NCBI GenBank assembly: GCA_048013815.1 | Contig: CM106585.1 | Span: 2,666,001 to 2,730,000 of the forward strand | Length of the DNA: 64,000 nucleotides | From: Setoptus koraiensis | Lineage: Eukaryota; Animalia; Arthropoda | Direction of reading: 5' to 3' | Shown: in pieces, positions 1-47,059 of the stretch | How positions within the stretch are numbered: the first letter of the stretch is position 1 | How the letters are laid out: each line of letters opens with the position of its first letter | Translations under genes and position numbers: made by a program | The notes under the pieces: model-generated | Told to the model about the DNA's origin: nothing | Databases searched by the model: none | What the model saw: only the letters and a program-made list of their open reading frames with translations

Positions 1-910
1 CGCGACACAAAAATGAAATACGCCGGCGATGCGTATTTTGCGGATTGTCCGCATCCACACGCCGTATGTAGTGCCAAAATGCCAGATTGTATATGGTCAG
101 TGGATGTCGCTTGTGGCTCGCAAGTCACAACGTTTGTGCAAGCTGCTGGCCAGCCAACAAACGAGCGAGGTGTGATTGACCCGTGGCTCATTTTTGTCAC
201 GAGTCACGAGTTGCGACCACGAGTTTTGCAGTCGACCTCTCGTGTTGTGGACGTTGTGCCAGCGGCAACTGGCCCCACACAATCAAGCACAACCAACCAG
301 CGGCTTGATTGGACGACGACACCCCGCACAAGAGTACAAGAGCCAGGTGACACCGTTAGCCGGGGTCACAGTTAACAGGGTCTGTTGTTGCAGTTATTAA
401 TCATGCGTCATCATTTGACATCATGAGCAGTCACAATCAGCAGCAATGTACAATGTGTAACGGATATAATAACGGATAACCCGCGATGACCGGCCCAACA
501 GCTGACAGTGTCATGCCGATCGACCATCGATTTGTGGCATGTGCCCTTGCGTAAAACGTGCAACATAAATGCAACAACCGCAACAGGAAATGGCCATTCA
601 AGTGGCACTCGCCGCTTGCATGATAATATCATGCATGCAAATGATATCATGATGATAATAACGGGCCCAAAACAGTAATAACAATAATGTCTGGCTCGGC
701 CATTTCAATTGTTTTGCGGGTTTTGAACTCTGTGCCCACTGTCACGCCGATGACGATAAGCGCCCCCGTGACTCGCCAGTCATGGCTCACGTCGGCGTGC
801 CCAGTGACCCGCAAGGTCTCGCTACTGACCCGTCAGCTTGCGCCCACCTCTCGCCGACAACAATAGCGGCGCTCCCACTTCGGGCCGGCAATCGTTACAA
901 TTGCCGCCTG

Positions 911-978
911 GCTCCGATCGCGGGCACCGATCGCGCGCTCCGATCGCTGGCACCGATCGCGCGCTCCGATCGCTGGCA
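911..978. repeat. 26-bp tandem repeat (about 2.6 copies) built from CGATCG palindromes
   Basis: gctccgatcgc(g/t)ggcaccgatcgcgc repeated; five CGATCG hexamers. Confidence 0.85.
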
Positions 979-1788
979 ATTATCAATGCGCCCATCATTA
1001 CGCAATGAGGAAGGAATCGTCGATGGGCGCACCGATAATTAGCGGCCAGGGTCGTCGCGAGCTTCGTTCTCGAGTGCAACGCAATTAGCATTTTTTAGCG
1101 TGCTTTCGTTGAATAACCGTGAATTTGGCAACCGCTGCCGCCGACAATGTCACAGACTAATATATGTGAGTTTTCCAGCAATGCGCCACAAACATGCCAA
1201 CGTTGGCAGACGGCGACAATAATCAATTATTGTCGTTTTCTCGCTCATTGATAATTGTATAAAACACTCACTGTTGCCGCATTATTATGTCAGCGACGAT
1301 GGCAAGCTCGCTCAGTCGGTTGAGGGGCGCATTTTCGTCTCGTTGTCGTCGTCTCTTCGTTGCAACCTTCCGATGGCGAGACGGTGCAACAGTGCGGCAG
1401 CGCGACGGTGCAACGGTGATAAGACGATGCGGCGAGCCGTGCCAATATGCTCTGAGGTGCACATGCAAAGCAGCCCTCGATGGAGCGAAACGCATGGACA
1501 TGAGCTCGGCAGAACGGATATATTCGCTGCTGCTGTTGCTGCCGTGAGGCGCTCCACAATTTACAAGCGATATCTCGGCGAGGCTTGTCAAATGCTAAAC
1601 ATAGACAATAAAGAGTTTAGCTGGCTCAGTATTCAAATGCTGGCTGGCTGGCTGGCTGGCTGGCGGCTGATGGTAGCAGCAGTAATTTGATGGGGTGTTT
1701 GTGCGGTCGTGCAATGACGTCAATTTGGAGCATAAATATTAAGTGATACACATCTCTGTATATGTGCTTGCTTGTTATGTGCGCACTT

Positions 1789-1890
1789 GAGGGATATATC
1801 TATACGAGGGATATGTATATACGAGGGATATGTATATATGAGGGATATACATATACGAGCGATGTACATATACGAGGGATATATATGTAA
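1789..1890. repeat. About 17-bp degenerate minisatellite (acgagggatatgtatat), about 6 copies
   Basis: Directly visible tandem units. Confidence 0.8.
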
Positions 1891-4458
1891 TATTTGATGC
1901 CTGTATGTATATATATCCCTCAAACATATAAGCATGTAACTTGCATGATGTAAGGGTATTTATAAATATGTTTACGACTCATGAGAGCTGCTCGTGATAC
2001 CAGATTCACAGGACATTATTACGAGCGATAGGGTGCAAACTTATTTCAGTCGCTGCTGCTCTTTTGCACATGTCACAATTGCCAATTGTTCACACTGGCT
2101 GCCTCGCCACGACGGGTCCCATTCACCTTGCTGCTTCAAGCTAAAAAAACTGACGAATAGTTGATGATAAGCGATAATAATTGTTGATCACAAACAAACT
2201 TTTATCTACTTGCACCCGGCGTAATAATAGCTGCTCTCACTCGTCGTCGTCTGGTCTGTGTGTGTGTTGACATATCTGTCACTTTTGGCCAATCATGCCC
2301 GCCTGACAAGCCTTGCGATAGTGCAAAAAACAACAACACAAACAGCACGAGCTTATTGCCAACGGCAACAATCTCAATTGTCAATTGTGTGCCAAAATGC
2401 AAATATGCAAATATAATGAACAACTCAATGCTAATTAACCAGCCGCTACAACAGCCGAGCAATTATGACAGCTGCTAACGTGCCGTGCCAATCAATAGCC
2501 ATAATAGCAATTATTCATGCTATTATCTAATACTATTATAACACACAGACACACAATACGCGGGCTGCATCAATGTGCCGCAACAACCGAGTTCTTCAAC
2601 TAGATTGTCACCTATTCGAGAACCACCAACGGCAACGAACGAGCGAAATCGACCGACCGACCCGAAGCCGATAAATGGCAGCAGCCAAGGTGAGTAGACA
2701 AGCGGCTCGGTGGCGCATCAACCTTGATATTCTCCGTCGTAGAGCTGAACGAGCTGAGCGATCGGCAATATTGTTGCCAACTTGTTCTGAGCTTACTTCA
2801 CAATTGTCACTTTATTGCCGGCGACTGTGCCGAGCCGACAGGTGGCGCCTCGCCAACGATGGTCCATATCGATTATGTAACATAATTATAAATAACGCAC
2901 ACACACAAGCATGAGTTAGACGAGTCAACCTGTTGGCCGAATGTTTGAATTGATGAGCGGGCTTCGCATGAACAGAGTTTATAAATACCCGACTTGTGCC
3001 GCCGCCGCTGCTGCTGTTAACGGCGATACTACAACAGCAACAACAACAACAACTGCAACTACAACTACAACAGCAACAAGTTGGGTTGCGTCATTTACTG
3101 AACAAGATTAGACCAGGATAAGAGTGACACCAATGGCAGCAGCGGCAGCATAATAATACGGCCAGTTATGTAGTTGTTGTGCCGTTATGTTCAGTGAGTT
3201 ATATGGTTAGTTAGTTAGCTGGTCTGTGGTGCTGGCGGTGGTGCAAATGGTGATGCCGCCGCCGCCGTTGTGATGCAGTTACATCGGCGGCAAACAGTTA
3301 GATGCGCATGTATGTGGCCTTAGCAATTAAAACAAAGACACACACACAACTATAAAATCATCATCACTATTACATAACGGTTAACGGTGTATGAGTGGTG
3401 GTGTTGCGAGTGCATGAGTGACTGAGCCAACTGTAGCTGCGCTGGCCACTGTGACAACAAGAATCTGTCATTTGTTTATTTGTGCTCTATTGGTTAACTA
3501 GGCCTAAACGCCATCAACTTTACCTGTGCTCCGCTTGTGCTTTACCTGTGCTTTAGCTGTGCTCGGCTGGTACCGTCGCCAGTGCTTCACTGGTGGCGGT
3601 GGTGTTGTCAAGCAGCTGCAGCTCAGGTGAGTTGTGGCCGCCTGTGCCGTTTTATGGTTGCCATAGTTACCTGGCGCATTTATATATTGCATTGCCACCA
3701 CAGCGGCATCAACAGCGCCATCAACAGCGCCATCAGCAGCGCCATCAGCAGCGACAACAGCAACAGTGTTACAGTTACAGCATTAACTAACGGCGCAACA
3801 TAACGGTAACTGGTGCCATACGACAAGTGGTTGTTTATTGGCCGCTGGTGCCACAGTCTAGATCAGACTGTGTGCTGTTGCCATTGAATGTTGATCAGCG
3901 ACAGCAGCAGCATCATCATCATTGCCATCGGGCATCTTCTATAGGTATTGTCCGCTGCTCAACAGCAGCAGCACACACACACCAACCATGTCCATTGAAT
4001 TGGAGCCAGCTCACCTAGATCCTCTCCCGAAGCTTGCCGAGCCAGCGGCCAGGAGAAGGATCTAGGTGAGGCGGTTAGTCGGGCCGATGACGCAATGCAA
4101 TCAGATTGATTTGTATTGAATTTCATTTCGTTCTGGCTCACACACACACTCACTCACTCACCTGTGCAAGTACAAGCACAAGTACAAGTACAAGTACAAG
4201 TACAAGTCAAATAATAAAAATAAACCTGACCAACGGTGCTGTCGCCGTCGCCGAGCCAGCAGCGACAACGTTGGCGCCGCCGTGCTCGAATTTAGGTGAG
4301 GTGAGCTAAGGTTAGGGGGGCTCTGCGATGACAGCCATCACAATCCATCTTTTCTCCTTTTTCGCCATCTCCACACTCTTTCTATTTGTGCCTCGACGCG
4401 CTGGCCAAGCTGGCGGTGCTGGCGACGCGGCTTCGGGGCGCATCCTTGCCGCTAAAAA

Positions 4459-4582
4459 CGACGACAACGACAACTGAAACGACGGCGACACCTGAAACGA
4501 CAGCGACAACCGAAACGACGCCGACAACTGAAACGACAACGACAACCGAAACGACAACAACAACTAAAACAACAACAACAAC
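4459..4582. repeat. 18-bp minisatellite (actgaaacgacagcgaca-like), about 6-7 copies
   Basis: gaaacgac recurs with an 18-nt period; one frame reads TETTAT. Confidence 0.8.
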
Positions 4583-5957
4583 GGCGGAGAGTTTCTTCAA
4601 CAACCTTCAATTTCCAATTCACTACCAGCCGTTCAAGTGTGTGTGTGTGTGTGTGTCGCATTGCAGTGTGTGTCGCATTGGAGATGGAGAGTATTGCTTT
4701 GATTGGCGATGATGCAACTAGTTTTGGCGTGTGTGTGTGTTCAACATTGTGTGTGCAGTCGTCACAATGTCAAGTGAGCTCAATGACAGAGTCCAGTTTC
4801 GGGCCAACAGCAACAACAACGGCAGCAGCGACAGCAACGACAACAACGACGGCAACGACGGCAACGACGGCAACGACAACAACGGCAACAACGACAACAA
4901 CGACGGCAACAGGTGACAGTTACTCACACTGCTGGCGCTGCTGCTCCAGTTGGTTATGAGAAGAAAAAGAAAAAACTTTTCTTCTGCTGTCCGCTTCTTC
5001 CACTGGTCGCGCTGGCCGATAGCGGCCACTCGCTATTAATACACCACCGCCACCGACAACGACAACGACAACAACAACAGCTACGACAACAACGACAACG
5101 ACAGGCGCTGTAGCCAGTGGCAGTTAAGTGCCGTGTTGCACATGTTGTGCCGTTGTCCACTTGCCTGCTTGTGTCGGCCGTGCTGCGACGGTTGTCGTCG
5201 TTGTTTCGCCGCGACCAATAGCGACCAGCAACAACAACAACAGCGACAACAACGACAACAGCGGCGGCGGACAGGCGAACGGTGACACAAACACACAAAT
5301 CCGCTTCTTATTTCAATCGGCAGGCACACACAAGCGTAACTTACCGTCAGTGGCCGTGGTTGTGTCAAGCGGCAGCCCCAACTGACAGCAACAAGTGACA
5401 GCAACAATAGCGGCTGCGACACACGCAGCCGAGCCAACCACCTATCTGGACGACACATAGAACACACATTCTGTTGTTCATTGGCAAGCTCGCTGCTCGA
5501 GGCAATGTCACTCGACAGGTAAAGGGGACGGCGGGCGTTTGAAAGAAATTGGGTCATTCACAGACAAACAAGCGGCAATTTCGTTGTAACAATGCGCGCC
5601 TCTCACCTTTGGTTTGGGCAGCGCTTCGGTTCGGGCAGCGCTTCGGTTCGGGCAGCGCAAGTTCCTTCGAAACGAAACTGGCGGGCGTGTTGCGTCACAG
5701 CGGCATTGGCGAGCGCATGTGAACAATCGAACGTCGCCGTCGTCGATACTGCGGATCCGATTGCAGATCCACTGATCTAAATTGGTCTGCGGCTATCACA
5801 TTCATTACCTGCCACAAGCTGCTGCTGCTGCTGCGACAACTTACACAAACAATTCGGGCGAGCAGCGAGCTGCTGAAAGTTGCCCGAAAGTAACGGTGCC
5901 GAGCAAAATTGCGTCTTGCTATTATTAGAGACACACTCGCCGCTGTAGCCGTGAGTT

Positions 5958-6308
5958 GTTGTTGGCTGTTGTGGGCTGTTGTTGGCTGTTGTGGGCTGTT
6001 GTCGGCTGTTGTGAGCCGTTGTGAGCCGTTGGCATGGCCACGTGAGCGGCAAACGGTAACCAAAGCCACAACTCGCTGTCATCCAGTGACAATTGGCGCT
6101 GTGAGATAATTGAGATTTGAATATTCGTTTCGCTGGCTCGGCGCTCGAACATTCACCAACATTCAAACAACGTTGCAGCCGCCGTCGAGCTGTGGCTTAA
6201 ATTAGCTCTGACACTTGTCGCTGTTGTTGGTCGCTCGTCGTTGTTTGTCGCTCGTCGTTGTTGGTCGCTCGTCGTTGTTTGTCGCTCGTCGTTGTTTGTC
6301 GCTCGTTG
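5958..6308. repeat. Two minisatellites: 10-bp (gttgtgggct) about 7 copies at 5958-6032 and 17-bp (gtcgctcgtcgttgttt) about 5 copies at 6229-6308
   Basis: Directly visible tandem units. Confidence 0.8.
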
Positions 6309-7936
6309 CCTGTCGTGTGTCGCTGGCAATGACAACCAAAGCCCGCTTTAGAGATTGTTGTTGCGCAACAATTTTCGCCACCGACCAGAACGCGTGCTGT
6401 GTGCGCAGTGCGCACTAGCCAATTGAATTGTAATTGTGTGTCTGTCTCACCTCTAGCGACTCATTCGATATGCGCGATTGTGCCTACCTGTCGAATCAAG
6501 CGACAGTGCAGTGAGAGGCAGAGGGACAAAAATAACAGTAGTTGCATAACTGATTGTGTGGCGGCCAGCATCGAGCCTAACGAGCGACGACGGCGCCCGC
6601 AACAAGTGAGCTGCTCTGTGTGAAAAGAATAGGCATGCCAAAAGAAGTTGTTAGCGCCGTCAGTTGGCGTTGCCGTTGTTGTCGCTGTTGTCGCTGTTGC
6701 CGTTGTTGTTGCCGCTGTTGTTGGCGTCGCTGTGCCGTTATGTAGATGAGCCGACTCCTTTGCATGTCTTGAAGAGCATGCTATAACGGTGCTGTTGCTG
6801 GCGTGGCCGGCGTTGTTGGCGCTGTTGTTGTTGTTGTTGTTGTTGTTGCCGTTGTTGTCAGGTCATGGCCACTTGCCACTCTATATCCTATTATTGTGCG
6901 CACTCGCTGGCAAGTGGCTCCGACGAGAAGCACAACTTGCCAGCTTGCACACAAAGGCGATTACATAATAGGCAACTATTACGTATTATTAATAACGGCC
7001 TAGGCCATTGCCTAGCCAGAGAGGCTCTCGCTTTCGTCTCGCCGTTGGCTGGCTGCTCGGCTGCTCGGCTGGCTGGCTACTTTTATCTGGCTGCCCGGCC
7101 GGCCGTCTATTTATCAGCCAGTGCGTGTGTGTGTGTGTCTGGCTTCGGTCTGGCTGGCTTCGGTTTGGCTGGCTTCGGTTTGGCTGGCTGCTTTTATCTG
7201 GCTGGCGGCTCGCGCCCAAGCCAGCCAGATAAAAGCCGCCAATGGCAATGGGGAGCGCACGCGCGCCACTGCTGGCAAGCTAGCGTTGGCACGTCGTAAA
7301 GCGGCCGGCTGACGGGCTGGCTGGCTGTGATAAACATAAACAAGTTTCGCTTATCCGATTCGCTCAATAAGCTGGCTTCGTCCGAAAAGGAAAACGTCTC
7401 GCAATTGGCGAGCTTTTCATAGAAACGCGCTCTCTCGGCTAAATAATAATAACCGGCTTTTGGCCAGCGCGCACACACACACAGCCGCCCATTGAGTCAC
7501 CTTACGAGCGAGCAACAAGTGCCTAACAAGTGGCGGCTTTATTTTCGCTTTTATCCGTATTCATTTCGCGCTAATTCTCGAGCTCGTCGGCTCGTTGGCT
7601 GCGACATGAGCACTGAGTGAGCGAAACATCTGACGAGACACACAAGCGCACGGCCGAGCAAACGAGGAAAGATTGAGAGTCTCGAATTGAGAGACTCGAT
7701 TCGAGAGGCAAAAGTGCAAAATTCGAGCGAGCTGCCCATACACACAACAGCGCACAACAGCACACAACAGCACACGACGGCATGCACGGCTCGACGGCCA
7801 GACCCGTCCCGTCCAAAACACCAAAGGAACTCACCTGTTTCCTGTCGACTTTCCTGCAGGACTTTCCTCGCCGGCTGGCTGGCCGTGTTGCGTTGCGTTG
7901 CACGTTCACGTAACGGCGTTGGCACAGTGCGAGCGC

Positions 7937-8035
7937 ATTGTGTAACAGCATTGTATAAGCATTGTATAAGCATTGTACAAGCATTGTATAAGCGTTGCAT
8001 AAGCGTTGTATAAGCCTTGTACAAGCGTCGTACAG
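7937..8035. repeat. 11-bp tandem repeat (agcattgtata), about 8-9 copies, decaying toward the 3' end
   Basis: cattgtataag/cattgtacaag/cgttgcataag/ccttgtacaag units. Confidence 0.85.
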
Positions 8036-8508
8036 GTGAGAGTTGTTAATGTAACGTCAATATAAATATACAAAAATATATTGTTGCGCTCGCCGTGAGC
8101 AGCCGATCTGAGCGGCCGACAGTGACTGTCGGCCACTCTCGCCCATGGCTGTTGCACGTGTGTCGTGTGTGTACGTGTGCGTGAATAGGGCGCCAATTGG
8201 CCGCTCGCAAACGGTTGACTCGCAAACAGTTGACTCGCGAATTGTTGAAAAAGTGGAAAAAGTCGAAAAGTGTTGCGCGTCAGGGTCGATTAGCGGCCAC
8301 TGCACGCCAATTTGTTGTGTGTGTGTTTCGCGTATCGATGTCGGCCCGGCGTCTGGCCGCGAAATCGATGTAAATGTTTACTGATTGGTGTCGCTGGCGC
8401 CGACGGAGCGGCCAGGACGCCGATAGAGCGGCCAGGAGCTCGCCGAGGGCGCCCGCCAGAGAAACAAAGTCGCTGCGGCGGCCCGAGCGGCGCGCACCGG
8501 CCCGTCAC

Positions 8509-8650
8509 GGCAACAACAACAGCACAACAACAACAGCACAACAACAGCAGCAACAACAACGACAACAACAACAGCAACAGCAACAACGACAGCAACAACG
8601 ACAGCAACAACGACAGCAACAACGACAGCAACAACGACAGCAACAACGAC
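8509..8650. repeat. CAA/CAG/CGA compound microsatellite including about 6 copies of 12-bp aacgacagcaac
   Basis: Directly visible. Confidence 0.85.
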
Positions 8651-9829
8651 GAGCGAGCAACTTATCACGACAGCGCCGAACGGCCGTTGATAGGGCCCGT
8701 CTGACAGGCGCTCGATGGGCGCTTGATAGGCGCTCGATAGGAGGAAAGAGCGCGACAGGAAAGGAGAGCCGCTAATTTATCGTACATAGTGTGGCTAGTG
8801 TGGCGCTGGCGAGATTATCTCATTAACTGTTATATTTGGCTGGCTAATTCCGCCAGCCAGTCAAATATATATAATAAGTGAGTCAAATTGGAAACGAGAT
8901 AACGCTCAAGATAGAACCAATTGTCGGCAACCAATCTCGCTCAGCGCTGACGCTTGCGCGCACTCAACGCACTGCAGCCAGCCCGACCAGCTAGTTACGT
9001 AATACCTGTCAACTTGTTTACATGTACACGGCACGCAACGGCCGCTACGTGATTCTTATTATAACAACAACAGCAACAACAACAATTGCCATCATTCATT
9101 TTTGGCAATACGCACAACTGGCTGCTCGGCTGCTCGGCTGGTGTCATGGTCATCCTTTGTTGAGAGCAACAAGCAACAAGTGCGCATGGATATTATGTTG
9201 TATAATGTGTTATATTATGTATTATTATGGTCAATGGCGACGCTGTAACTGCTGCGCTGGCTGCGCCGCCACCTCTGTCCACCTAGCGCGCATACAAACA
9301 AACAATGCTCGCCACACTCACCGACAAACAACGCAAGCGGCGGCACGGGGCGCCCCGCAAACAGGCCGGCGCTGTACGGCTCGACGGGCCGACCCGACCA
9401 ATTCAATGGGAGCTGCTGGCTGGCAGACCCGTGTGTGTGACGGGCGCGCCGCCTAATTGGGCGCCCATCCGACCACACATGCTCACTCACTCACTCACTG
9501 ATCGTGTCGGATTGGTCTGACTCTCAATCTCGCTCTGGCGAGACGGTCTCACAACGGGCCCGTCGCCTGTCCGCTGGCGGCCCGACCGGCGACCCGACTG
9601 GCGGCTCGACTGGCGGCTCGAAGCGGCATCAGCGGCCTGAACGACAACGCGCTGGGGCCCGTTTAGATGCCGACACACATTGGCTCGCTGACAGAGCAGA
9701 AACAATGGACACACAGATCCGACAATGAAATCGAGCGACCGACAAACAAACAAGCGCACTCGATTATCCAGAGCAGGCCAGACGAGCGCGCCAATTAAGG
9801 TGGGCAGCGATCACAATAGCAGCTCATCA

Positions 9830-10364
9830 ATTGTTGTTGTTGATGTCATTTAAGGAGAGCTTTCTCCTGTTGTTGCCGTCGTTGTTGTTGTTGTTGCTGT
9901 TGCCATTGCTGCCGTTGTTGCTGTTGCTGTTGTTGTTGTTGTTGTTGTTGTCGTTGTTGTCGTTGTCGTTGTTGTTGTTGTTGTTGTTGTTGTTGGTGTT
10001 GGTGGTGCCACGGTCATGCCCGCTGCCGCCGCCAGTTCCCAGAACGGCCATTGATGGGCCAAGCCTGATACTGACCATCGTCGTAATGACAAAGCGAGCG
10101 AGTAAAAGAGCGCACAGAGAGAGAGAGGGAGAGAGAGAGTGAGCCAACAGCAGCGACAGGCATGAGTTGCGGTGGTGAGCGACAGGTGAAATGATTTCAA
10201 TATCAAGTGGCGCCGCCCAAGCTCGCTCGCCTGCGCTTGTGTCCGCTCGCTCGGGCTTGCGGCGGCCAGCGAGCGGCGGGTTGCGCATGTGCCCGTCTAT
10301 TTGTCGTTGTTGTTTTTGTCGCTGTTGTCGTTGTTGCTGTCGTTGTCGTCGCTGCTGCTGTTGT

Positions 10365-10397
<33 letters not shown>

Positions 10398-10400
10398 GGT
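9830..10400. repeat. Long (GTT/GCT/GTC)n compound microsatellites (about 9870-10000 and 10300-10400)
   Basis: Directly visible; they generate the poly-N/T/Q/L/V/C ORFs in the track. Confidence 0.9.
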
Positions 10401-11876
10401 TGTGTTGGCGGCGCGCGAGGCGAGCCGCCAGTGCAGATGGACACACAAAACAGCAGCGGCGATTGTCAAGTGGCCGCGACAGAGCGAGCGACTGGCGAGA
10501 AAAGGAAAGTCCCAGTTTGGGCGTCAGTGGCTCCGCTGGCTCGGCTGGCCGGCGCTCGAATGGCTCGAATCAGACTGAGTCACATGAGAGAGTTGGCATG
10601 AGTGCGCTTGTGTGACGTCGCTGCTGACGCAACAAGCGCTGCCCGTCGAGCCGGTCGGTCGGTCGGTCGGTTGGCCGGTTGGCCGCTGCGACGGACACAC
10701 TCTGGCGGCGAGCTGATTTAATTCTAGGGCCGGCGAGCCGGGCGCTCATCAAACTATTTAGTCGCTCAAGCGTGAATCCTAGCCCCATATTGGCGCTGCC
10801 AAGGCAGCGCCGGCCGACATCGTTCTCAGCCGACCGGTCGCCGGCATCGTCTTGCCTCTACGAGGCAGCAGCTTCTATGAGCCAGCTTCTATGAGCCAGC
10901 TTCTATGGCTAGCCAGTGACTGTATGAGGCAGCAGCGGCCGGCGACAAGAGCAACGGCTCTAGTGTGGCGGCCATAGTGTTCGGCCGTAGCGAGCGGAGA
11001 GTATGTCACAAATAATTGGTCATCAAAGTCAAGTTTCTTATAATAGTTTTTCGCTGCCAGTTGTCGTTGCGGTCGCTGGCTAAGCTGTGTGTGTGTGTCG
11101 CGAATTCTAGTTCTCGCTGCCTGTGCTGCCTGCTCCAGTCTAGGTAACTAGTTCACCGCGGCCGCCAGTACCGTTATCGGCGCCAGCGCTGTCATAGGAG
11201 TAGCCCGAAGTAGGCATTTCAAGTCCAACGCGGAGACACTCTCCAGTGTAGATCTCAATTACTGTGACACCGCCGCCGTTACCCGTTCACCTGTTGCCTG
11301 CTCACCTGTTCTCTGGCGCCCGTTAGCCCGCTCACCTGTTGCCGTCGCTGTCGCCGTTGCCGTCGCTGTTGCTGTCGCCGTTGCCGTCGCTGTTGCTGTT
11401 GCTGTTGCCATTCACACACACACGACTGCCTCCCTCTCTATTTAGCTCTCTGTTTATCTGCTGGCTTGTCGCTGCTCGCTGCTCTCGGCTGGCCGCTCTC
11501 CGTTCGCCTGTCTAGCCGGCCTAGCCGGCCGGCTGCGTAGTGGGCAGCTAAATAAAGAACCGCCAAGACGGACCTTGCCAGCAACAGTGGTAGTAGTTAG
11601 TTTTACTGTCACTACCAACGCTGCCAACATAAATTATCCCGGCCGTCACACACACACACACACAGCGCACACACACACACACACTCGCTCGCTGGGGGAA
11701 GACACTGTGCGCTGTGCCCCTGCGCACAATAGTGCACGAGCTTGCGAGTGGCTGCTGTGCCAAACTTGGCCAGCCGAGTCGCTGCTGTGTTATAATTAGG
11801 CAACTGACATGCGCACGATGCCTTCCCCCCCGCCATCGGTCTGATACTTTATGGCTACTGCTAGCCTATTACCTGA

Positions 11877-11908
<32 letters not shown>

Positions 11909-13618
11909 AGAAGTCATTTTAAGCTTGTGCCAGTTCAATGTTAATCATGCCGTCATCAGCAGCGTATCACAGCAGCAGCAGCAGCGAGCATCATCGGCAT
12001 CAACGCAACAACAGCAATTGCGCCAACGACAACAACGACAGCGGCACTAGGCAGCGAGACGCAACAACGACAACAGACGACAACTGTGTCGACAACAACG
12101 ACAACACTTTTAGTGGCGACATTTCCATCGAGACAATCGTCCGTAACGGTCGCAACAACGCGCTACCATAGTTGTGTGCGCGACACACAAACACTCAGCG
12201 GCAGCAGCAACCAACAACAGCAACCAACAACCAACGAACAAAGAAAGTTTCAATTCCGTTTCAGCAAGACATCATCAGTTCGTTATGAACTTATTATCAG
12301 TTACTCGGCAGCTCCGTTGAGGCCAACAAATTGATCAGCAAATCTCTTTCTCTCTCTCTCGCTCACTCTCTGTCTCGTTGTAACCTTAAATGTTTGAATT
12401 ACGTCATCACGTCCACCGACTGCCAGCCAATCGCTCGAATTGTGCTCACACTTGTTAGCCACTAATAGAGAAATAATCACACATAGAGAAATAATCGCAC
12501 ACACAGAGAAATCAAATCACGCCAAAACAAAAAACACAACAAGCGTTACATCATCAAGCGCCAAATCAAGTGTGCGCTCCTGAACACAACTGCATCTTGT
12601 TGCAACAATATTCATCCGCCTGAAGAATACATAATATACACATTTATCCGCTGGCAGACGCATAGCAAAATCAACACATCGGACACAATATCGGCATCTA
12701 CTAAACGGATAGCATTTGTAAGTAGCTATCACACACTCTATTCGTCCAGTGCTCGTCGGCGCCCTCTCTCGCGAGCAGCCGCCAATGGGCCGTCTAGGCC
12801 CAATTTTGGCCCAATCTCGGGCCAGCACCGGAGCACCGAAGCACCGAAGCTTCGGAGCAACGAGGCATCGAGGCATCGCTGGCCGGGTCCCGCGCGGGCC
12901 CGACGAAGCGGCCGCTGCCAGGTGGCGCTGGCAACGCCCCATGCCTGTGGTCAGTGTTGTCTGTAGCCATGAATCTAGTCGCCTTGTGACACTGTTGTCA
13001 GTGGGTCACTTGTTGCTTGTTTGCTCGCGCTACAAACGGCCCAAATTGGCGTTGTCTGGCCTGTTTCGTCGACGGCCATTCGACAGCCATTGTCAAAGTC
13101 GGCGCTGATGAACCGTTTCCACTGACTTTAATTAGCGCCACTGGCTCGCACTGGCTTGTGCCGGCCTAATGGTGCAGCGCACCGACCCACTACTGCGCTA
13201 ATTGACCAGTGGCACACACACACACACACACGCACAAACTGGCTGCTAGTGAGTGGCACGCAAGCACGCGGCAGCACAGGCACGCCACCGGTTGCTGGAA
13301 CATGCAACGACTAATAGCTATTTTGTGTGTTCGTGAGTTCCGTCAGGGGCCGAGCACGGTGCACAGTTGGCGCGGGCCCCTGTCGCGGCTTGCGTGGCAC
13401 AGCGTGGCACAGTGGCACAAGCATTGTGTGACACACACCGGCGATGTCGTGTGCTGGCTGTGCCGCGCTCGCTGCAACCAGGATGCTAAACGGCGACCAA
13501 GAGCGACAGGCCAAAGTAAACCTAAGTAAACCGAAGTAAACCGAAGCCAGCCGAAGAGAAGGCTGCCTCTCGTGACGCTGACAATGCCGCTCGGGCGGCC
13601 GGGCAGAGGCGAGCGGCG

Positions 13619-13690
13619 GAGAGCCGCGGATGGCCGAGGATTGAGAGAGAGCCGAGGAGAGCCGCGGAGAGCCGCGGAGAGCCGCGGAGA
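13619..13690. repeat. 10-bp repeat gagagccg(c/a)g, about 5 copies
   Basis: Directly visible. Confidence 0.75.
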
Positions 13691-15936
13691 GGGAATAATA
13701 GGAACGCTCATGCTGGTAGATGGCACTCGAGCGGCCATTAACTATTGGCATTTTTGCTGCGTCTGTGTCCGTTTAGTGGCGCTTGATCAATTGCATCAAT
13801 AGCGAGATTAACATTGTGTGCCGTTGTGTGTCGGCGCAAGGGCACGAGAGCACAAGTGCGCGTCCCTCGAATCGTTCGAGCCGAATGTGCGCCCGCTCTC
13901 AGTGATCGCTCAATATCTCGGCCCGAGATCTGGCCCGCTGGTGATGCGATCCGCGGCGCGGCGCGCCGCTGCTTTCCGTCGTGCACTCGGCGCAATTTAA
14001 ATAGCCACTTGCCCGGCTCCGGCCGGCCTTATCTTGTGGCGTGCACCGGCCGCTCGCCCTGGCCGCGGCCGGAGCGGGCACAGTGGAGCGCTCGCCTGTT
14101 TTATTGCCCCGGTTGGTGCGGCGGCGGCCGCGAGGACGGGCGAGCTGCCTGCAGGCTGCCATTATCGCAACAGCCAAGATGGAGGACGCGCGTTCGGCAG
14201 CGAGCGGAGGCGGATACTGCAACAGTCTGTGGTCGTGGCTGTTCGCCACCGATGCCGCTTCATGCTTCATCTCGTGGCAAACAGGATGATGGCGCAACAA
14301 GAGATAATAATAACAATAATAATGATGCCCGTCGCCGTAACAGCAGCGCCGTGCTCGTCGCCGCCGGCCACTGGCCGGCCGACTCGGCCGAAGCCAGCAG
14401 AAGCCGGCCAAAGACGGCAGAAGCGGCCGAAGCCGAGGCCAGTGGAAGCCAGATGAAGCGTGTAGGAAGCCGCGCGTCATTATCGCCGCTACCGACCGGC
14501 CCACTGACCGAGCGAGCCAGCGCCGGCAACTAGGCCGTCACGACTTTTACTTGTTGCTGCTGCTGCCGTTGCCCGGCGCTGGTTGGCGCAACAGCGACAC
14601 TGCAGCAGCGACACTGCGACCGCGCTCGCCCGCCGGCACCAAGGAAGCCCCCGAACTCCGGAGCTCGTTGGCTTGTTGGCTTGCTGGTTTGCGTGCGTGC
14701 CCGCCTGCCGGTGCGCCGAAACGCGCAATGCGCGCCGGCACACTGACCCTATGGTCAACGGTTGGCACTCCGGCCACCGCATAATCACTGCCTGTGCCAT
14801 ACACACAAGCGCCGGCCGCTCATCGCCGCCGTGTGTGTGTATTTTTATTTTGCACTGGCCGGGCACTGCCGCGGTGCAAAGTAGTGCCAGCGGTGCCAGC
14901 GGTGCTAGTATAAACAGGAGATGAGCTCTCGTCTCGTGACGCTCGTTCTTTCACGTGGGAACGAACATACCAGCGCACACATCGGTCCCTCTAGGCGCGA
15001 CGCACACACTGGTTCGCGAATGGTTCGCCAGTGGTTCGCCAGTGGTTCGCCGATGGTTCGCGGCGAACCATTCGCGGCGAATCGCGTCGACCTCTCAGAG
15101 GTCACCTTTCGGAGAAGAGCCCGACGAGGTGTACGCTTGCGAGCCCCCCTCGCCGCGCCGCCTCCCCTCTCGAGAACCGTCGGCAGGCCGGTGTGTTGTG
15201 TGTCGTTGGCTTCGGACGCTCCGAATCGGGGCGGCCAGCCCAGCGGATCGCCCAAGGAGAGGAGCACCGTGAGCATGCGCTCATCGCAACGCATCATCAT
15301 CGCCGCGACTGGTGCGCTCACACGCTGCACCAGGCACCAAACTACGTGTGTGTGTGTGTGTATCGCTAGAATAAACTCAAGTTGAGCATAATGTGCAACA
15401 GTTATACGCACATTCAATGGTGACCATTGTGCGGTGGTGCTGTTGCTGCTGCACCATTGTGTGTCCGTGCATTGCACCAGTTGAACGTCCACCAGTGCAC
15501 CAATGCGCAAAGGAACCTTCTCTGCAAACAACTCGCTGCATCAGATTGCATGCTACGAACAATGGCCAGTGGCCAGTGGGCAGCAGCATTGTGATGCACG
15601 CGCTTCAACAGAAAAGAAGCAGATAAATACAACAGTGCGACAGAGAGAGAGAGAGAGAAAGAGAAAATCTTACTTCTGACAATTGCCACTTTTGTCCGCC
15701 GGACAAACTGCTGCATGCCATCACTATCGCTCGCACTGACACAACAGCAACAACAGCAACAACAACCACAACAACACTAGTACCGTAATACATTTGCATA
15801 ATTACTCATTCGCCTCTTCTCGTTTCTCACCTTGCACACAATCATCACCAATCCGACACTTGCATTTGGCCCTGACGTCGCTGCAAACTTCACTTGCGAC
15901 ATCAAATCAAATGCAGGCAACAACAACACAACTATT

Positions 15937-17778
15937 ATGGAGTCTAATATCACATTGTGGCAGTTCCTGCTGGAATTACTAGTTAACACTGAACAATATA
16001 AACAAATTATCACATGGACTAACAACGACGGCGAATTCAAATTAATCAACGCCGAAGAGGTGGCCAAATTATGGGGCCTCAGGAAAAACAAGCACAATAT
16101 GAACTATGATAAATTAAGCAGAGCATTGAGATATTATTATGATAAGCACATTATTAAGAAGGTACAAGGACAAAAATTTGTCTACCGTTTTGTTACAAAT
16201 CATAATATTCCACCACAGCATCATACAAATAATCCTCAGCATCATATTCATTCGCCAACGCACACATTGGCCAACTCTCATCATCAGCCCAATAATAATC
16301 AATTTCAATTGACGTCATCGCCCTCTCATCATAAACCTAGCAACCCGTTTCAGTTGACATCGCCCCCACACAATCATAATAGCACCAACAATCCTTATCA
16401 CCATCCATTGACGTCGCCCTCTCATCATCATTTAACTAGTGGAAACCCATATCATCACCCATTGACATCGCCCTCCCATCTCAATCCTAACCATCCATAT
16501 CAATTGACATCACCCCTATATGAGAGACATTATAACGCTCTATTATTACGCAGCCAGCAACAACAACACCATCATCACTTCCCCACTGAACCGACCGATC
16601 TTTCTAGGAAGACAGGAAGTTGTAGTTCGGTCGCTAGTAGCACTTCGTCGGCTTCACCGACATCAACATCACCACCCAACTCTCCGACCACCACGACTAC
16701 CACAACTTCATTAGCCACTACGACTCAATCAGGTGGTTTGGATATTCACAACTCGATTTTATTGCGTAAGAGACATCGATTGGCGGCCCAACTTAGTTCC
16801 AACAACAGCAACAACAACAATAATAATATTAGTAACAACAACTCGAGCAACAACATCGAGCTGGACAACAACAATAACACAAAGCTGGACAACAACAATA
16901 ACACCAAGCTGGATAACAACAATAATAGCAAGTTGGACAATAATAATAACAGTATTCAATCATCTTTCAGTAGCAACAACAACAGTAGCACCAATAACAA
17001 CAACAATACTAGCACCAACAACAACAATAATACTAGCAACAACAACAATGTCAACAGTAACATAAAATTGGAGAACAACAGTGGCAACAACAACAACTGC
17101 AGCAATATTAATATCAAATCGTCGCCTTCCCCGGCCGAAAATACTAATGCTGACAATGTTGTTGAATATGCCTCATCTACATCACCGATGAATTTAGTTT
17201 CTAACAATTCTCCGCGGGCTACAGCTGCAGATCGTCTTATGCATCGTCTGAATTCATCCTCTACATCAAGCTCGAATTTACCTCCACCACTTACTACTCC
17301 ATTGAATGGCAGTGGACATCATTCATTTGCTTCTCCAATATCTAAGACACCAACTTCGTTGCAGACGCCCGTTATATCACTGAATAGTCCTTTTTTTCCA
17401 AAATCAGCCAGTGGCAATTCGCATCCATTAGCTTTCAGTGGTCAAGGACCACCAACACCATCTGCAGCCCATAGTATGTCATCTTACGCATTAGGATTTT
17501 GTAGCTCACCATTTAATACATCGAGTCCACATTTGTTGAACAATGTTGCTAATCACATTAGCATGAACAATAACAATAACAACCCTGGCGTTTTCTACGG
17601 AGCCTCTCCAGCGACTGGTTCGCCATATACATTCCAATTTCCATCTTCGCCATCGGCCGCCTCAGCAATGGCATCTTTAGGCCAATCCTCCTTGTTTAAT
17701 TCACCTTTGTTATCGCCTCTGTTATTTACTGACCCTCAATCATTGTATGCCAAATCAGTATCACTCCAGCAATGTTAA
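15937..17778 (+). CDS. Elk: ETS-domain transcription factor of the Elk/TCF (ELK1/3/4, LIN-1) subfamily; single coding exon, about 613 aa from [10 protein letters not shown]
   Basis: N-terminal ETS domain [15 protein letters not shown]...[54 protein letters not shown] closely matches ELK3 as I recall it ([12 protein letters not shown]...). C-terminal FQFP MAPK docking motif and many S/T-P sites. The ORF track starts at 15832; ATG 15937 aligns with the family N-terminus. Confidence 0.93.
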
Positions 17779-43552: not shown

Positions 43553-43931
43553 TTTGAACTATGTCCTTGAACTTCCTCAAAATGGTTTGTGTGCAAGGTC
43601 TGTTGCAGTTTAGATGAAACATTAGCTGACAAACGTCGTGTACAATTAATTCATAAATAATCAAGAGATTAAGACCCAAAAATAAGTTTCATAACATACA
43701 AGTCGAAAATTCTTGCGAAATAAATTTTTGTTTTTTTTTTATTATAACATGCTGATACTCGTCATGAAGAAATGTGAACACATGGCGAGAATTTGATAAC
43801 ATGAAGGCATAATGCGCGCATGTGAACCACCCCAAACAGAGCTCAGTAACATTGGTGTATTTAGCCACCTAGCATCATCGAAGAAAGTGACATTACCAGT
43901 ATACAAATGATAAATGTAAACCTCTAGTTTC

Positions 43932-45935
43932 TCATTCGTGGATAGGTGACTTGGAGAATGACACCCTCAAATGATTATCCTCGCTGATTTCATAATTATG
44001 CATCTTAATCAGAGCTATTGTAGCATATTCAACAGAATCCAATTTCACCAAGGCCATCTTCCTGCAGAATTCAAAATGGGTGAAAAATGTAAATAACCAA
44101 AGCATGTTAGACGTAATTTTTTACTATGAACTTTTACATCAGCTTGAAAAATTAACTCTTACCTATCTTTGGGGAAAAATTTCAACGTGGCGTAATCAAA
44201 CCCACATTCTTTCTTGAATGCATTGCTTATTTCAACTTCGCTCACTGATGCTGGAATGTTGGACACATGAAGAGTGTTAGACGGTGGATAAATATTGAGA
44301 TAGTTTCTTGAACCTGGTATCTTGAATCTATGTAGAGGCGAATTCGTGAAGTCTTTGGTGAGACCAGCGTCTGATTGATTTCCATCACGTGGCATTTGCA
44401 CTAATTGGTGTTTGCTTTGCGTGACACGGATGGATTTTCCAAAAACTCTTTGCCTGTCGAGAAAACTTTGTGCCACCTGGGCTTGATTTGGCTCGGCCAT
44501 CTGAATGAGAGCGTTGTCTTTCTTATTAAATAAGATTTTTACCCTCATCACGTCACCAAAAACACCTATAGGATTTGTTAGTTTGAGAAAAGATATTGTT
44601 AGTAATGTAACTAATGGAGATTCAGTCCACCCATGTTGTAATGTGCTTAATCTAATACTGTCTATTAGATAAATTGTCATAAAAGTTTCATGTAAGTGTC
44701 TGTGTGTTACTTATTCTACAAAGATGTATCTATACACTAAATGACATACCAAAGAGTGTGAACAAAGCTTCAGGAGTTGCCAACTTTAGATTGGAAGCAA
44801 GTAAGTATTAATAGTGTTTGTTATAGCGGTAGTAGTAGTCATACGTTCATGGTGTGGTATTTCAGATTGATCATAGTGAATCATTTGTGCATGATTTAAC
44901 ATAATAGTGTGATTGTGCAAGGAGATACAAATTATAATAAAATTTAATCAGACATTTTAAGATAAATAATGAAGATAAAAGATTTCCATTCGTATTAATT
45001 ATGAATGTGTGTCAATGACAAGATAGTTTCTGATTGATAAAGAGATAGAGAGAAAGAGGGATGTGAAAGGTATGCTAGTCTTGGGAACTGTCTTGTTTTG
45101 TCTATTATCTCATGATATACTATACCTGTTCGTCTAGATTGGATGCTAAAAGCACTGGTCCACATGGAATCACTCTTTGTTGTTGTTGTTGTTGCTGGAG
45201 TGCTTGCTGTTGGAAACTGTTGAATACCATAGCATATTGATTATGAGCTTGCGATAGACCATGTCCATAAGCAGGCGGAGGCTCTGTACTTTGATTATTT
45301 GATCGTTGCAGAGAAGCTAGAACAGCTGCTGCTAAGGCATTGAATGAAGGATTAGTTGAGGCTAGCTTCAGCATGGGAGCTAAACTGGAGGGGTCTAGCA
45401 GGGGATTAGCGCCGATAAGCGGTTCGAATTGGAGGTCATTATGATTCTTTTGGACACCAACACTATTATGTATACCTCCTCCCATAACGTTCATTGAGCT
45501 TGATGAGCCTTGGGGTAGATTGGAGTTGGTAAAATCTCTAGATTTGTCATTGTTAAATTTAACATTAAGACATTCTAATTTGGAATAATCAATGCGCATG
45601 GTGCAGGCATTTGGATAGATGTTTTGATTATCTAGTGTCGTTTTGGCTATTTGGGCGAACCTGGGTGAATTGAATTGGACCAATGATTGGAATTTTCCAT
45701 TTTTATTAAAAGTCACTATCTTGTCGACCTTGCCAGCATTCGAGAAGACATCATGAAGTGCCTCTAGAGTGATTGGATTCACCATGTTTTCAATGACGAC
45801 CCTTATGACCGAGGTTGGCTCTTCTGCATCTCTGATCCGTTTGCTAATTGGCCCTCCAACATCATTCAATGATGTGCCTGAATCATCTGAGCAATCTTTT
45901 CGTTTAAAAGAATTCGTTGTGGTGAGGCTTTCCAT
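43932..45935 (-). CDS. heph: Polypyrimidine tract-binding protein (PTB/hephaestus). Exons (minus): 45935-45126, 44783-44750 (34 nt), 44565-44163, 44061-43932; 458 aa
   Basis: Exon lengths 810+34+403+130=1377 nt, in frame. RRM2 ([23 protein letters not shown]...[16 protein letters not shown]), RRM3 ([10 protein letters not shown]|[12 protein letters not shown]|[22 protein letters not shown]), RRM4 ([12 protein letters not shown]...PKDR|KMAL...HLRVSFSKS). Confidence 0.93.
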
Positions 45936-47059
45936 GGTTGAATTTAATATTATTCTACAGTATAAATATAATGTATATGTAATAATAAAAAAAAAGTAAT
46001 TTTATCTCTTTCCAATCAAATACTACTCGGGCAGAATAGCAGTGCGAGTAATGGAAAATATTGAAGAGATATTTTTTTTTTATTTTGTCTTGCACAGCTG
46101 AAGTGGCAAGTGCACAATAACTGATAGTATTTACACAGACGAGATACAATCTACAATTTAGATTAGTGACCGAGGGAGATAGGGAGGGCCATACGCATCG
46201 GGGAGCCGCTACCTCCTATCCGCCCGACAGCTGAGAAGGAGTGCTGGGAGTTCATTTCATCGTTTCCATTCAACAGGGAGCCAAAGGCAAACTCCCGGCT
46301 CCCTATTTTAAATCGGACAAAGGGAGGCGGGAGGGGTCCTCCCCCTCCTGTAAAGAGCTCAGGAGGGAGGTAGCGTCTCCTCTGATGACTAATGTAGATT
46401 TTACATGTATATTGGGTGCGCTGTTTACAGATTGCGCACACTAGCTTATAAGAAAATCCGTCGGAGGCGCTGGCGTCGGTCAAAAAGGCACAGCCACCAT
46501 TGGTGCTACCAATGGTACAGTTCGGCCACCATCTGCATATACTGTAGCTTCCACAATTCATTAGCAATATGGCATAAAAATGCACTGTGGTAGTCAGAGT
46601 AGAATTGGCAGTTCAAAAAAGGCACCAGCTTAAAACACTCTCTACACTTGAAAACGGTAATCGTCTTTGTTTTAGTGATCACTGCTAATAACGAACCATG
46701 CTGCATGTGTAGACTCATCTATTTTATTCCTTCTGTGCGTGCTTTTGTGGACACAAAGCTGGCAGCTTTTCTTTGTGCGTATCTTGGTCGGTCTTGTGCA
46801 AGCTGTCTGGATGTTGTGCGGAAAATACATAAAACCATACTGGCACAATATAATGGTTTCGTCTTTTGTGCGGTTCATCCATATACAGAGCACGCACAAA
46901 TAGGCCTTGGTGCGTGTGCACAGATAGTATAAAACAAGTCCTATTGTACCCAGTACAACCAGATATTCTATACAGAGGCTCTTCATTAGTTTGCTTCCAA
47001 ATTTCATCATCGATTGAAAACTATATTCGAATATTGATTTCGAAACGAAATAAACTGAT

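Follow-up and report, generated by a model that had tools for sequence, protein, structure and literature searches.

Which introns must intron-poor eukaryotes keep, and why? A concrete case for this question is the gene for PTB (hnRNP I), the polypyrimidine tract-binding protein, on the minus strand of a 64,000-nucleotide (nt) stretch of DNA from Setoptus koraiensis, probably an eriophyoid mite (GenBank assembly GCA_048013815.1, contig CM106585.1, positions 2,666,001 to 2,730,000; hereafter the window, in whose own numbering all positions are given). The gene retains three introns among neighbours that are single open reading frames (ORFs), and two of these introns flank an exon of only 34 nt at the start of the third RNA recognition motif (RRM3). 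Autoregulation of PTB by skipping of exon 11 is a textbook example of the coupling of splicing to mRNA decay, and an initial annotation of the window, made from the letters alone, had proposed that the mite micro-exon is equivalent to this vertebrate switch exon. We regard the orthology of the micro-exon with exon 11 of PTBP1 and exon 10 of PTBP2 as near certain on comparative grounds, and the same exon with its AG-free upstream intron can now be followed across nematodes, molluscs, annelid-like and insect contigs, and mites. What appears to be new is the extension of a known architecture to invertebrates, together with its survival in minimal form in a genome purged of introns.

Read from the sequence and its ORFs, the gene runs from 45935 to 43932 and comprises four coding exons and three introns, with the start ATG at 45935-45933 and the stop codon at 43934-43932; these coordinates correct those of the initial annotation. 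Its parts are listed here in transcript order.

45126..45935, minus strand: exon 1 coding sequence (from ORF, Pfam and tblastn), 270 codons covering a basic N-terminus, RRM2 and the RRM2-RRM3 linker, ending in phase 0 with GAA CAG.
44784..45125, minus strand: intron 1, 342 nt, gtatag...ctaaag (GT...AAG).
44750..44783, minus strand: micro-exon, 34 nt, made up of 11 codons plus the initial base of a Gly codon; it opens RRM3 and is followed by gtatgt.
44566..44749, minus strand: intron 2, 184 nt, gtatgt...ctatag.
44163..44565, minus strand: exon 3, the remainder of RRM3, a linker and most of RRM4; its first two bases finish the Gly codon.
44062..44162, minus strand: intron 3, 101 nt, at an ancestral position between FFPKDR and K; the sole junction 3' of the stop codon that skipping would create.
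43932..44061, minus strand: exon 4 coding sequence, the end of RRM4 and the stop codon.

The micro-exon is entered in phase 0 and left in phase 1. Direct reading, the GT-AG borders and the frame all bear out the exon as it had been predicted, and its accompanying features were found as described: the acceptor is a weak AAG with 57% pyrimidines in the last 40 nt of intron 1, the exon itself contains a CUCUU, and a CU-rich tract lies upstream in the same intron. The exons were searched one at a time against Pfam and protein databases, which placed RRM_8/RRM_1 in exon 1 and RRM_5 in exon 3 (7e-20), and the protein encoded by exon 3 is 60-69% identical to animal PTBs in similarity searches. Of the four RRMs that characterize the PTB/hnRNP I family, the last two of which form a didomain, the mite gene has RRM2, RRM3 and RRM4; RRM1 was sought by tblastn with four PTB proteins and found nowhere in the 64-kb window. 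The mite protein is a three-RRM derivative of the family, orthologous to its other members through RRM2-4. Its coding sequence begins about 40 residues before RRM2 with a basic KRK...KRIR stretch. The PTB genes of two close relatives (loci L001 and L008) look alike in missing RRM1; those of two intron-poor loci (L006 and L010) retain it. A CAA/CAG run at 45169-45204 (minus strand) encodes poly-glutamine in the RRM2-RRM3 linker and was flagged as a repeat at which reads break off.

The genomic loci of the close relatives L001 and L008 carry this 34-nt exon with codon position and phase unchanged, and so do the intron-poor PTB genes L006/L007 and L010, an insect-like contig (L009), the wasp Trichomalopsis (L011), the limpet Lottia (L012) and the nematode Mesorhabditis (L014). 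A comparison of exon-intron structure across chelicerate and insect loci had been suggested as a check, and it returned an exon identical in length, position and phase, which extends to mollusc and nematode as well. Metagenome contigs were then scanned with a degenerate pattern that consisted only of the 3' 25 nt of the exon followed by GTA and left the acceptor out. An AG positioned to give exactly 34 nt was found at 62 of 65 independent invertebrate metagenome loci and, since the pattern is blind to the acceptor, the exon is more than a chance match. The remaining three comprise one chance match and two loci (L023 and L063) at which the exon appears to be 31 nt long. There the acceptor apparently lies 3 nt further in, at a CAG or AAG inside the usual exon, and the phase is kept in what is a one-codon variant.

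Human exon 11 presumably encodes RVTPQSLFILF-G, and ORF-type predictions from fish (P0168 and P0172) are consistent with this assumption. The vertebrate exons, PTBP1 exon 11 and PTBP2 exon 10, are both 34 nt long (PMC1940037). The mite exon shares this length with them, along with the phase, the place in RRM3, a long AG-exclusion zone and conserved flanks, in agreement with the equivalence that had been proposed. On this evidence the micro-exon is ancestral to bilaterian animals, as are its phase and its location within RRM3. An exon-3 protein tree meant to show how L006 and L010 relate to the window had long branches and did not resolve, and three independent mite lineages are therefore not claimed. 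The tick locus L013 was left out, its annotated first exon being spurious and its micro-exon lying beyond the examined range. A route to further relatives by synteny with the neighbouring gene MCM5 (P0012, P0032) ended in loci without PTB (L002-L005), the gene order not being kept at that distance. In the literature that we searched, PTB autoregulation by this exon is described only for vertebrates, with no invertebrate description of the exon or its AG-free intron, and heph is not mentioned in the Drosophila survey of nonsense-mediated decay (NMD).

The upstream intron has an unusual layout, of which the following elements are discussed below.

45039..45060, minus strand: CU-rich tract, 22 nt, with up to 23 pyrimidines per 25 nt; intron 1 has no better pyrimidine tract.
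45030..45032, minus strand: CAG adjoining the CU tract on its 3' side, 246 nt before the micro-exon; it looks like a canonical 3' splice site.
44786..45029, minus strand: AG-exclusion zone, 244 nt directly upstream of the micro-exon, without any AG.
44959..44983, minus strand: U-rich tract inside the AG-free zone, 20/25 pyrimidines, about 200 nt from the exon.

The evidence that carries the argument about this layout comes from a cross-phylum set of metagenome loci, mostly from non-mite animals (annelid-like, termite-like and other invertebrate contigs), in which the next exon of the same genes served as the control. Over 37 distinct invertebrate loci, the AG-free zone before the 34-nt exon has a median length of 180 nt, reaching at least 100 nt in 33 loci and at least 150 nt in 27. 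Before the next exon the median is 21 nt, and only one of 19 zones reaches at least 100 nt. The contrast between these medians across invertebrates argues that the architecture is specific to this exon, and the unusual 3' splice-site layout would accordingly belong to it across phyla. In 24 of 40 loci the best pyrimidine tract falls within the zone's first third.

The same pattern is seen in the window and in the loci nearest to it in structure. No AG-free run in the 64 kb, whichever the strand, is longer than the 244-nt zone (rank 1 of 7228), for which base composition predicts about 6.8 AG (P=1e-4 by mononucleotide shuffles). It holds 0 AG and 20 CT dinucleotides, and the avoidance of AG is therefore strand-specific. 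The zone before the micro-exon occupies 71% of intron 1 in the window, and measures 292 nt in L001 (84% of the intron), 730 nt in L008 (83%), 374 nt in L006 (80%) and 625 nt in L010 (100%), against 43, 80, 106, 51 and 93 nt before exon 3 in the window, L001, L008, L006 and L010, respectively; before exon 4 of the window it is 60 nt. The short zones of introns 2 and 3 begin just before TACTAAC (44604-44598) or TCTAAC (44109-44114), which are yeast-like branch-site motifs. That of intron 1 is 4-6x longer and has no such motif at its start.

The CU-rich tract at the far end of this intron is a candidate binding site for PTB and/or U2AF. In L001 and L008 a CU tract lies at the 5' end of the AG-free zone. 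The best pyrimidine tract of intron 1 is far from the exon in all five loci (positions -280, -292, -721, -328 and -552 for the window, L001, L008, L006 and L010, respectively): in L001, L008, L006 and L010 it falls close to the zone's upstream end, and in the window it lies immediately 5' of the zone. Within the zone, a TTAAT at 44998-44994 precedes the U-rich tract, and the two together form a candidate distant branch point and its pyrimidine tract. The CAG at 45032-45030 is confined to the window's species, with no AG at this place in L001 or L008, and could possibly be a decoy or an alternative 3' splice site. Reading the frame from it gives a stop after 5 codons, so its use would likewise be unproductive.

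Conservation between species singles out the same region. All identities that follow come from the alignment of the window with its syntenic relative L001, two close species with about 91% identity over their coding exons.

44700..44950, minus strand: near-invariant block round the micro-exon, 248/252 columns (98.4%) identical to L001.

This block is centred on the micro-exon and reaches into both introns, and the first ~50 nt of intron 2 are 98% conserved. Its 98.4% identity exceeds the 80-82% of four-fold sites in PTB and the 59% of intron 3, and the binomial probability for its upstream part is 7e-13 to 3e-17. Intron 1 as a whole is 94% identical, which is above the coding exons; four-fold sites in the neighbouring torsin gene are 66% identical, and intergenic DNA 60-70%. 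Codon positions 1 and 2 of PTB are 97.5% identical and position 3 about 80%, which indicates purifying selection on the protein. The flanking introns themselves are, by this alignment, under strong purifying selection. Intron 1 has expanded to 880 nt in L008, a more distant relative, yet ~60 nt of sequence immediately 5' of the exon and ~45 nt immediately 3' of it have stayed nearly unchanged.

What skipping of the micro-exon would do to the message can be read from the frame.

44548..44550, minus strand: TGA reached after skipping, in a shifted frame that reads VFLVT and then stops.

Exon 3 is then translated from its first base as GTG TTT TTG GTG ACG TGA. The initial annotation had placed this stop at 44550-44548, about 385 nt ahead of the last junction, and the reading frame confirms it: in silico, 385 nt separate the stop from the exon 3/4 junction downstream of it at 44163, far more than the 50 nt by which a premature stop would have to precede a later junction. 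In L006, L009 and L010, skipping likewise brings a stop within 5-9 codons. Among 19 metagenome loci it does so within 5-8 codons in 11 and after 33-44 codons in six, with no stop inside 50 codons in the other two.

The introns that the gene has kept are those that such a frame shift would call for. The annotated PTB gene of Lottia has at least 13 introns; that of the window keeps three, namely those on either side of the micro-exon and a third beyond the stop that skipping would create. L010 retains the equivalent three positions, and L006 retains both flanks, a different ancestral downstream intron and a further intron in the linker. A downstream intron is kept in all three intron-poor PTB genes (L006:8409-8469; L010:~4708-4755; window 44062-44162), not always the same one, which fits a need for a downstream exon junction. 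Random retention of three introns out of 13 would include both flanks with a probability of about 0.04. The retained set exactly suits a frame-shift switch with junction-dependent decay, which we take as suggestive and not as proof. The initial annotation had held that the flanking introns were selectively kept while neighbouring genes have none; the retention of both flanks and the intronless state of the neighbours stand, and selection for retention is suggested without being proven.

The neighbouring genes are indeed single ORFs, encoding MCM5 (774 aa), Hsp110 (775 aa), torsin (386 aa), ATG14 (276 aa) and tetraspanin (246 aa), the first three of which had been named as lacking introns. For MCM5, about 30 relatives with 70-81% identity were found in Logan, JGI and ENA assemblies, and the best named matches are ticks and mites at 59-61%. 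More than 80% of eriophyoid genes are intronless, and the introns retained in the eriophyoid Aculops are biased towards the 5' ends of genes (PMC7738191). Unlike this bias, the 5' 810 nt of the window's PTB gene are intron-free. The base composition of the window changes sharply at ~16 kb, from 50-58% G+C over positions 1-16000 to 37-45% in the remainder.

These observations raise the possibility of a feedback switch, which could operate as follows. The exon would be weak by virtue of its AAG acceptor and poor nearby pyrimidine tract, and its inclusion would rely on signals far upstream in the long AG-free intron, including the CU-rich tract. When PTB is abundant, it would bind there, and probably also to the conserved flanks, and block recognition of the exon. 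Exon 1 would then be joined to exon 3, giving an mRNA that encodes only RRM2 and five further residues. This mRNA would either be degraded, its last junction lying 3' of the stop, or simply yield no functional protein, and the net outcome would be negative feedback on the level of PTB. Under this reading, the two flanking introns and one downstream were kept because the switch needed them, and that requirement would explain their survival amid near-total intron loss. Repression of exon 11 in human cells requires RRM3-4 and not RRM1-2 (PMC10342978), and a PTB without RRM1 could thus still sustain such a loop. We consider the chances of a functioning PTB feedback switch at this exon to be evenly balanced. 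A broader proposal, plausible to us but held with a little less confidence than an even chance would warrant, is that the 34-nt exon, the intron with its distant branch point and a downstream 'licensing' intron together constitute a switch by alternative splicing coupled to NMD (AS-NMD) that was present in the bilaterian ancestor, survived the intron purge in eriophyoid mites and became ultraconserved there.

The exon could instead be constitutive, that is, always included, with the conserved flanks and the AG-free zone serving as enhancers or safeguards for a weak 34-nt exon and the introns kept by chance or for want of any gain from their loss. We think this explanation improbable on balance yet a serious contender, and a number of points tell in its favour or otherwise weigh against a switch. 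No skipping was observed: four poly-A/oligo-dT RNA runs (X8, X11, X12 and X13) gave 0 reads on 43600-46600, and hence no junction support, because the libraries probably came from the host plant, the mite being a contaminant of the DNA libraries. (The RNA runs share their species label with DNA runs that hold part of the locus.) Protein searches turned up no product of a spliced transcript. Counts of UCUU, CUCU and UCUCU in introns 1 and 2 are at most marginal against shuffles (P 0.04-0.3), with none standing out in intron 2, and the one CU tract present could be a pyrimidine tract of the usual kind. A weak branch-site candidate, TATAAC, lies near the exon at -38, and the CAG between the CU tract and the exon misfits simple scanning from a branch point upstream of the tract. 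Micro-exons often require conserved flanks merely for inclusion. The argument from a 385-nt distance borrows the 50-nt rule of the vertebrate exon junction complex, which is not established for mites. The flanking introns are adjacent, which makes their joint retention less improbable than that of two independent introns, and this adjacency, together with shared ancestry, weakens the figure of 0.04. In C. elegans, ptb-1 is listed with an alternative exon, which may or may not correspond to the 34-nt exon, that creates no premature termination codon and is not smg-sensitive (PMC2265522). Finally, the AG-free zone of the mite is not diagnostic by itself; we dropped it as decisive evidence and relied instead on the cross-phylum comparison with its matched control. 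This comparison speaks against constitutive inclusion, since the architecture is specific to one intron across phyla (180 vs 21 nt). In humans, large AG-exclusion zones are strongly linked to alternative splicing, and it was this link that first raised the suspicion of PTB exon 11 being alternative (PMC1431707). A stronger acceptor would help an exon that is always included, but L001 and L008 have conserved the weak AAG and L010 likewise has one. The introns that were retained are, moreover, exactly those that an AS-NMD switch needs.

It is very unlikely, in our assessment, that the conserved block instead hosts some other element, such as a small nucleolar RNA (snoRNA), a microRNA, another non-coding RNA or a DNA-level regulator, that would account for both the conservation and the intron retention. 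Intron-poor genomes do often keep introns that host snoRNAs, and ATGAT and CTGA motifs in the block bear a loose resemblance to C/D boxes, but these C-like and D-like motifs are only 4 nt apart. Reading the block as a structured RNA or snoRNA was rejected: Rfam gave no match at gathering thresholds in the window and only chance-level matches (E at least 1.6) at 44500-45200, and no folding signal was found on either strand (z -0.51 and +0.12). The conservation is, furthermore, centred on the micro-exon and spread over both introns, the strand-specific avoidance of AG is what would be expected of a splicing signal on the PTB transcript, and long AG-free zones recur in phyla whose intron sequences are unrelated. 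An error in the gene model, through other splice sites that make the exon something other than 34 nt or through a decaying gene copy, is less probable still, to the point of being barely credible. No transcript evidence was obtained that would speak to it directly; set against it, only the 34-nt version keeps RRM3 in frame and yields the LFTLFG followed by V(Y/F)GDV that is found in all PTBs, the boundaries are identical in more than 60 loci, and the difference between codon positions reported above reflects selection on the protein.

If the feedback switch is real and as old as its exon, PTB autoregulation would rank among the oldest known animal AS-NMD circuits and the mite locus would be its minimal natural form. 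The age of the circuit becomes directly testable with the loci assembled here. The mite gene also offers a very compact natural minigene, measuring ~1.0 kb between the donor of exon 1 and exon 4 and suited to dissecting the distant branch point, the weak acceptor and the binding of PTB.

Several known systems can be set beside this one. Autoregulatory introns of ribosomal-protein genes in yeast are retained in an intron-poor genome, and their products regulate their own splicing. The mite case would be alike in that an intron is kept in a streamlined genome for self-regulated splicing; in yeast, intron retention or blocked splicing is regulated and not the skipping of a frame-shifting micro-exon, and the analogy is functional only. 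Exons with distant branch points and AG-exclusion zones are rare in humans, at ~1 in 160-400 introns (PMC1431707). The mite exon shares with them an AG-free zone of at least 150 nt and a best pyrimidine tract near its upstream end, or just upstream of it in the window.

Exon 10 of PTBP2 (nPTB) is repressed by PTBP1 and lies inside an ultraconserved element (Spellman et al., 2007, PMC1940037). It has a 438-nt AG-free zone with a predicted branch point at -389 (PMC1431707). The mite exon is its 34-nt orthologue and has, like it, a flanking intron conserved above the level of synonymous sites, although the mite conservation was measured between two close species and not across classes. In contrast to the cross-regulation of paralogues in vertebrates, there is one PTB gene in the window, so any loop in the mite would be autoregulatory. 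The closest comparison is with PTBP1 exon 11, for which autoregulatory AS-NMD is reported by Wollerton et al. (2004; as cited in PMC1940037) and by Gooding et al. (2006; PMC1431707). Skipping, NMD and dependence on PTB have been shown there in human cells, whereas the mite exon is known from its sequence; the mite protein is also without RRM1, its genome has lost nearly all other introns, and the window's species has an AG between the CU tract and the exon. The human exon has a 381-nt AG-exclusion zone with a branch point at -351 that was verified by mutation, and the zone in Fugu is 590 nt long (PMC1431707). Mite and vertebrate exons are alike in being 34 nt long at the start of RRM3, in the early stop upstream of a later junction that follows from skipping, in an extended conserved upstream region, and in a long AG-free zone (381 nt in human and 590 nt in Fugu; here 244 nt, and 292-730 nt in relatives), the far end of which is marked by a pyrimidine tract.

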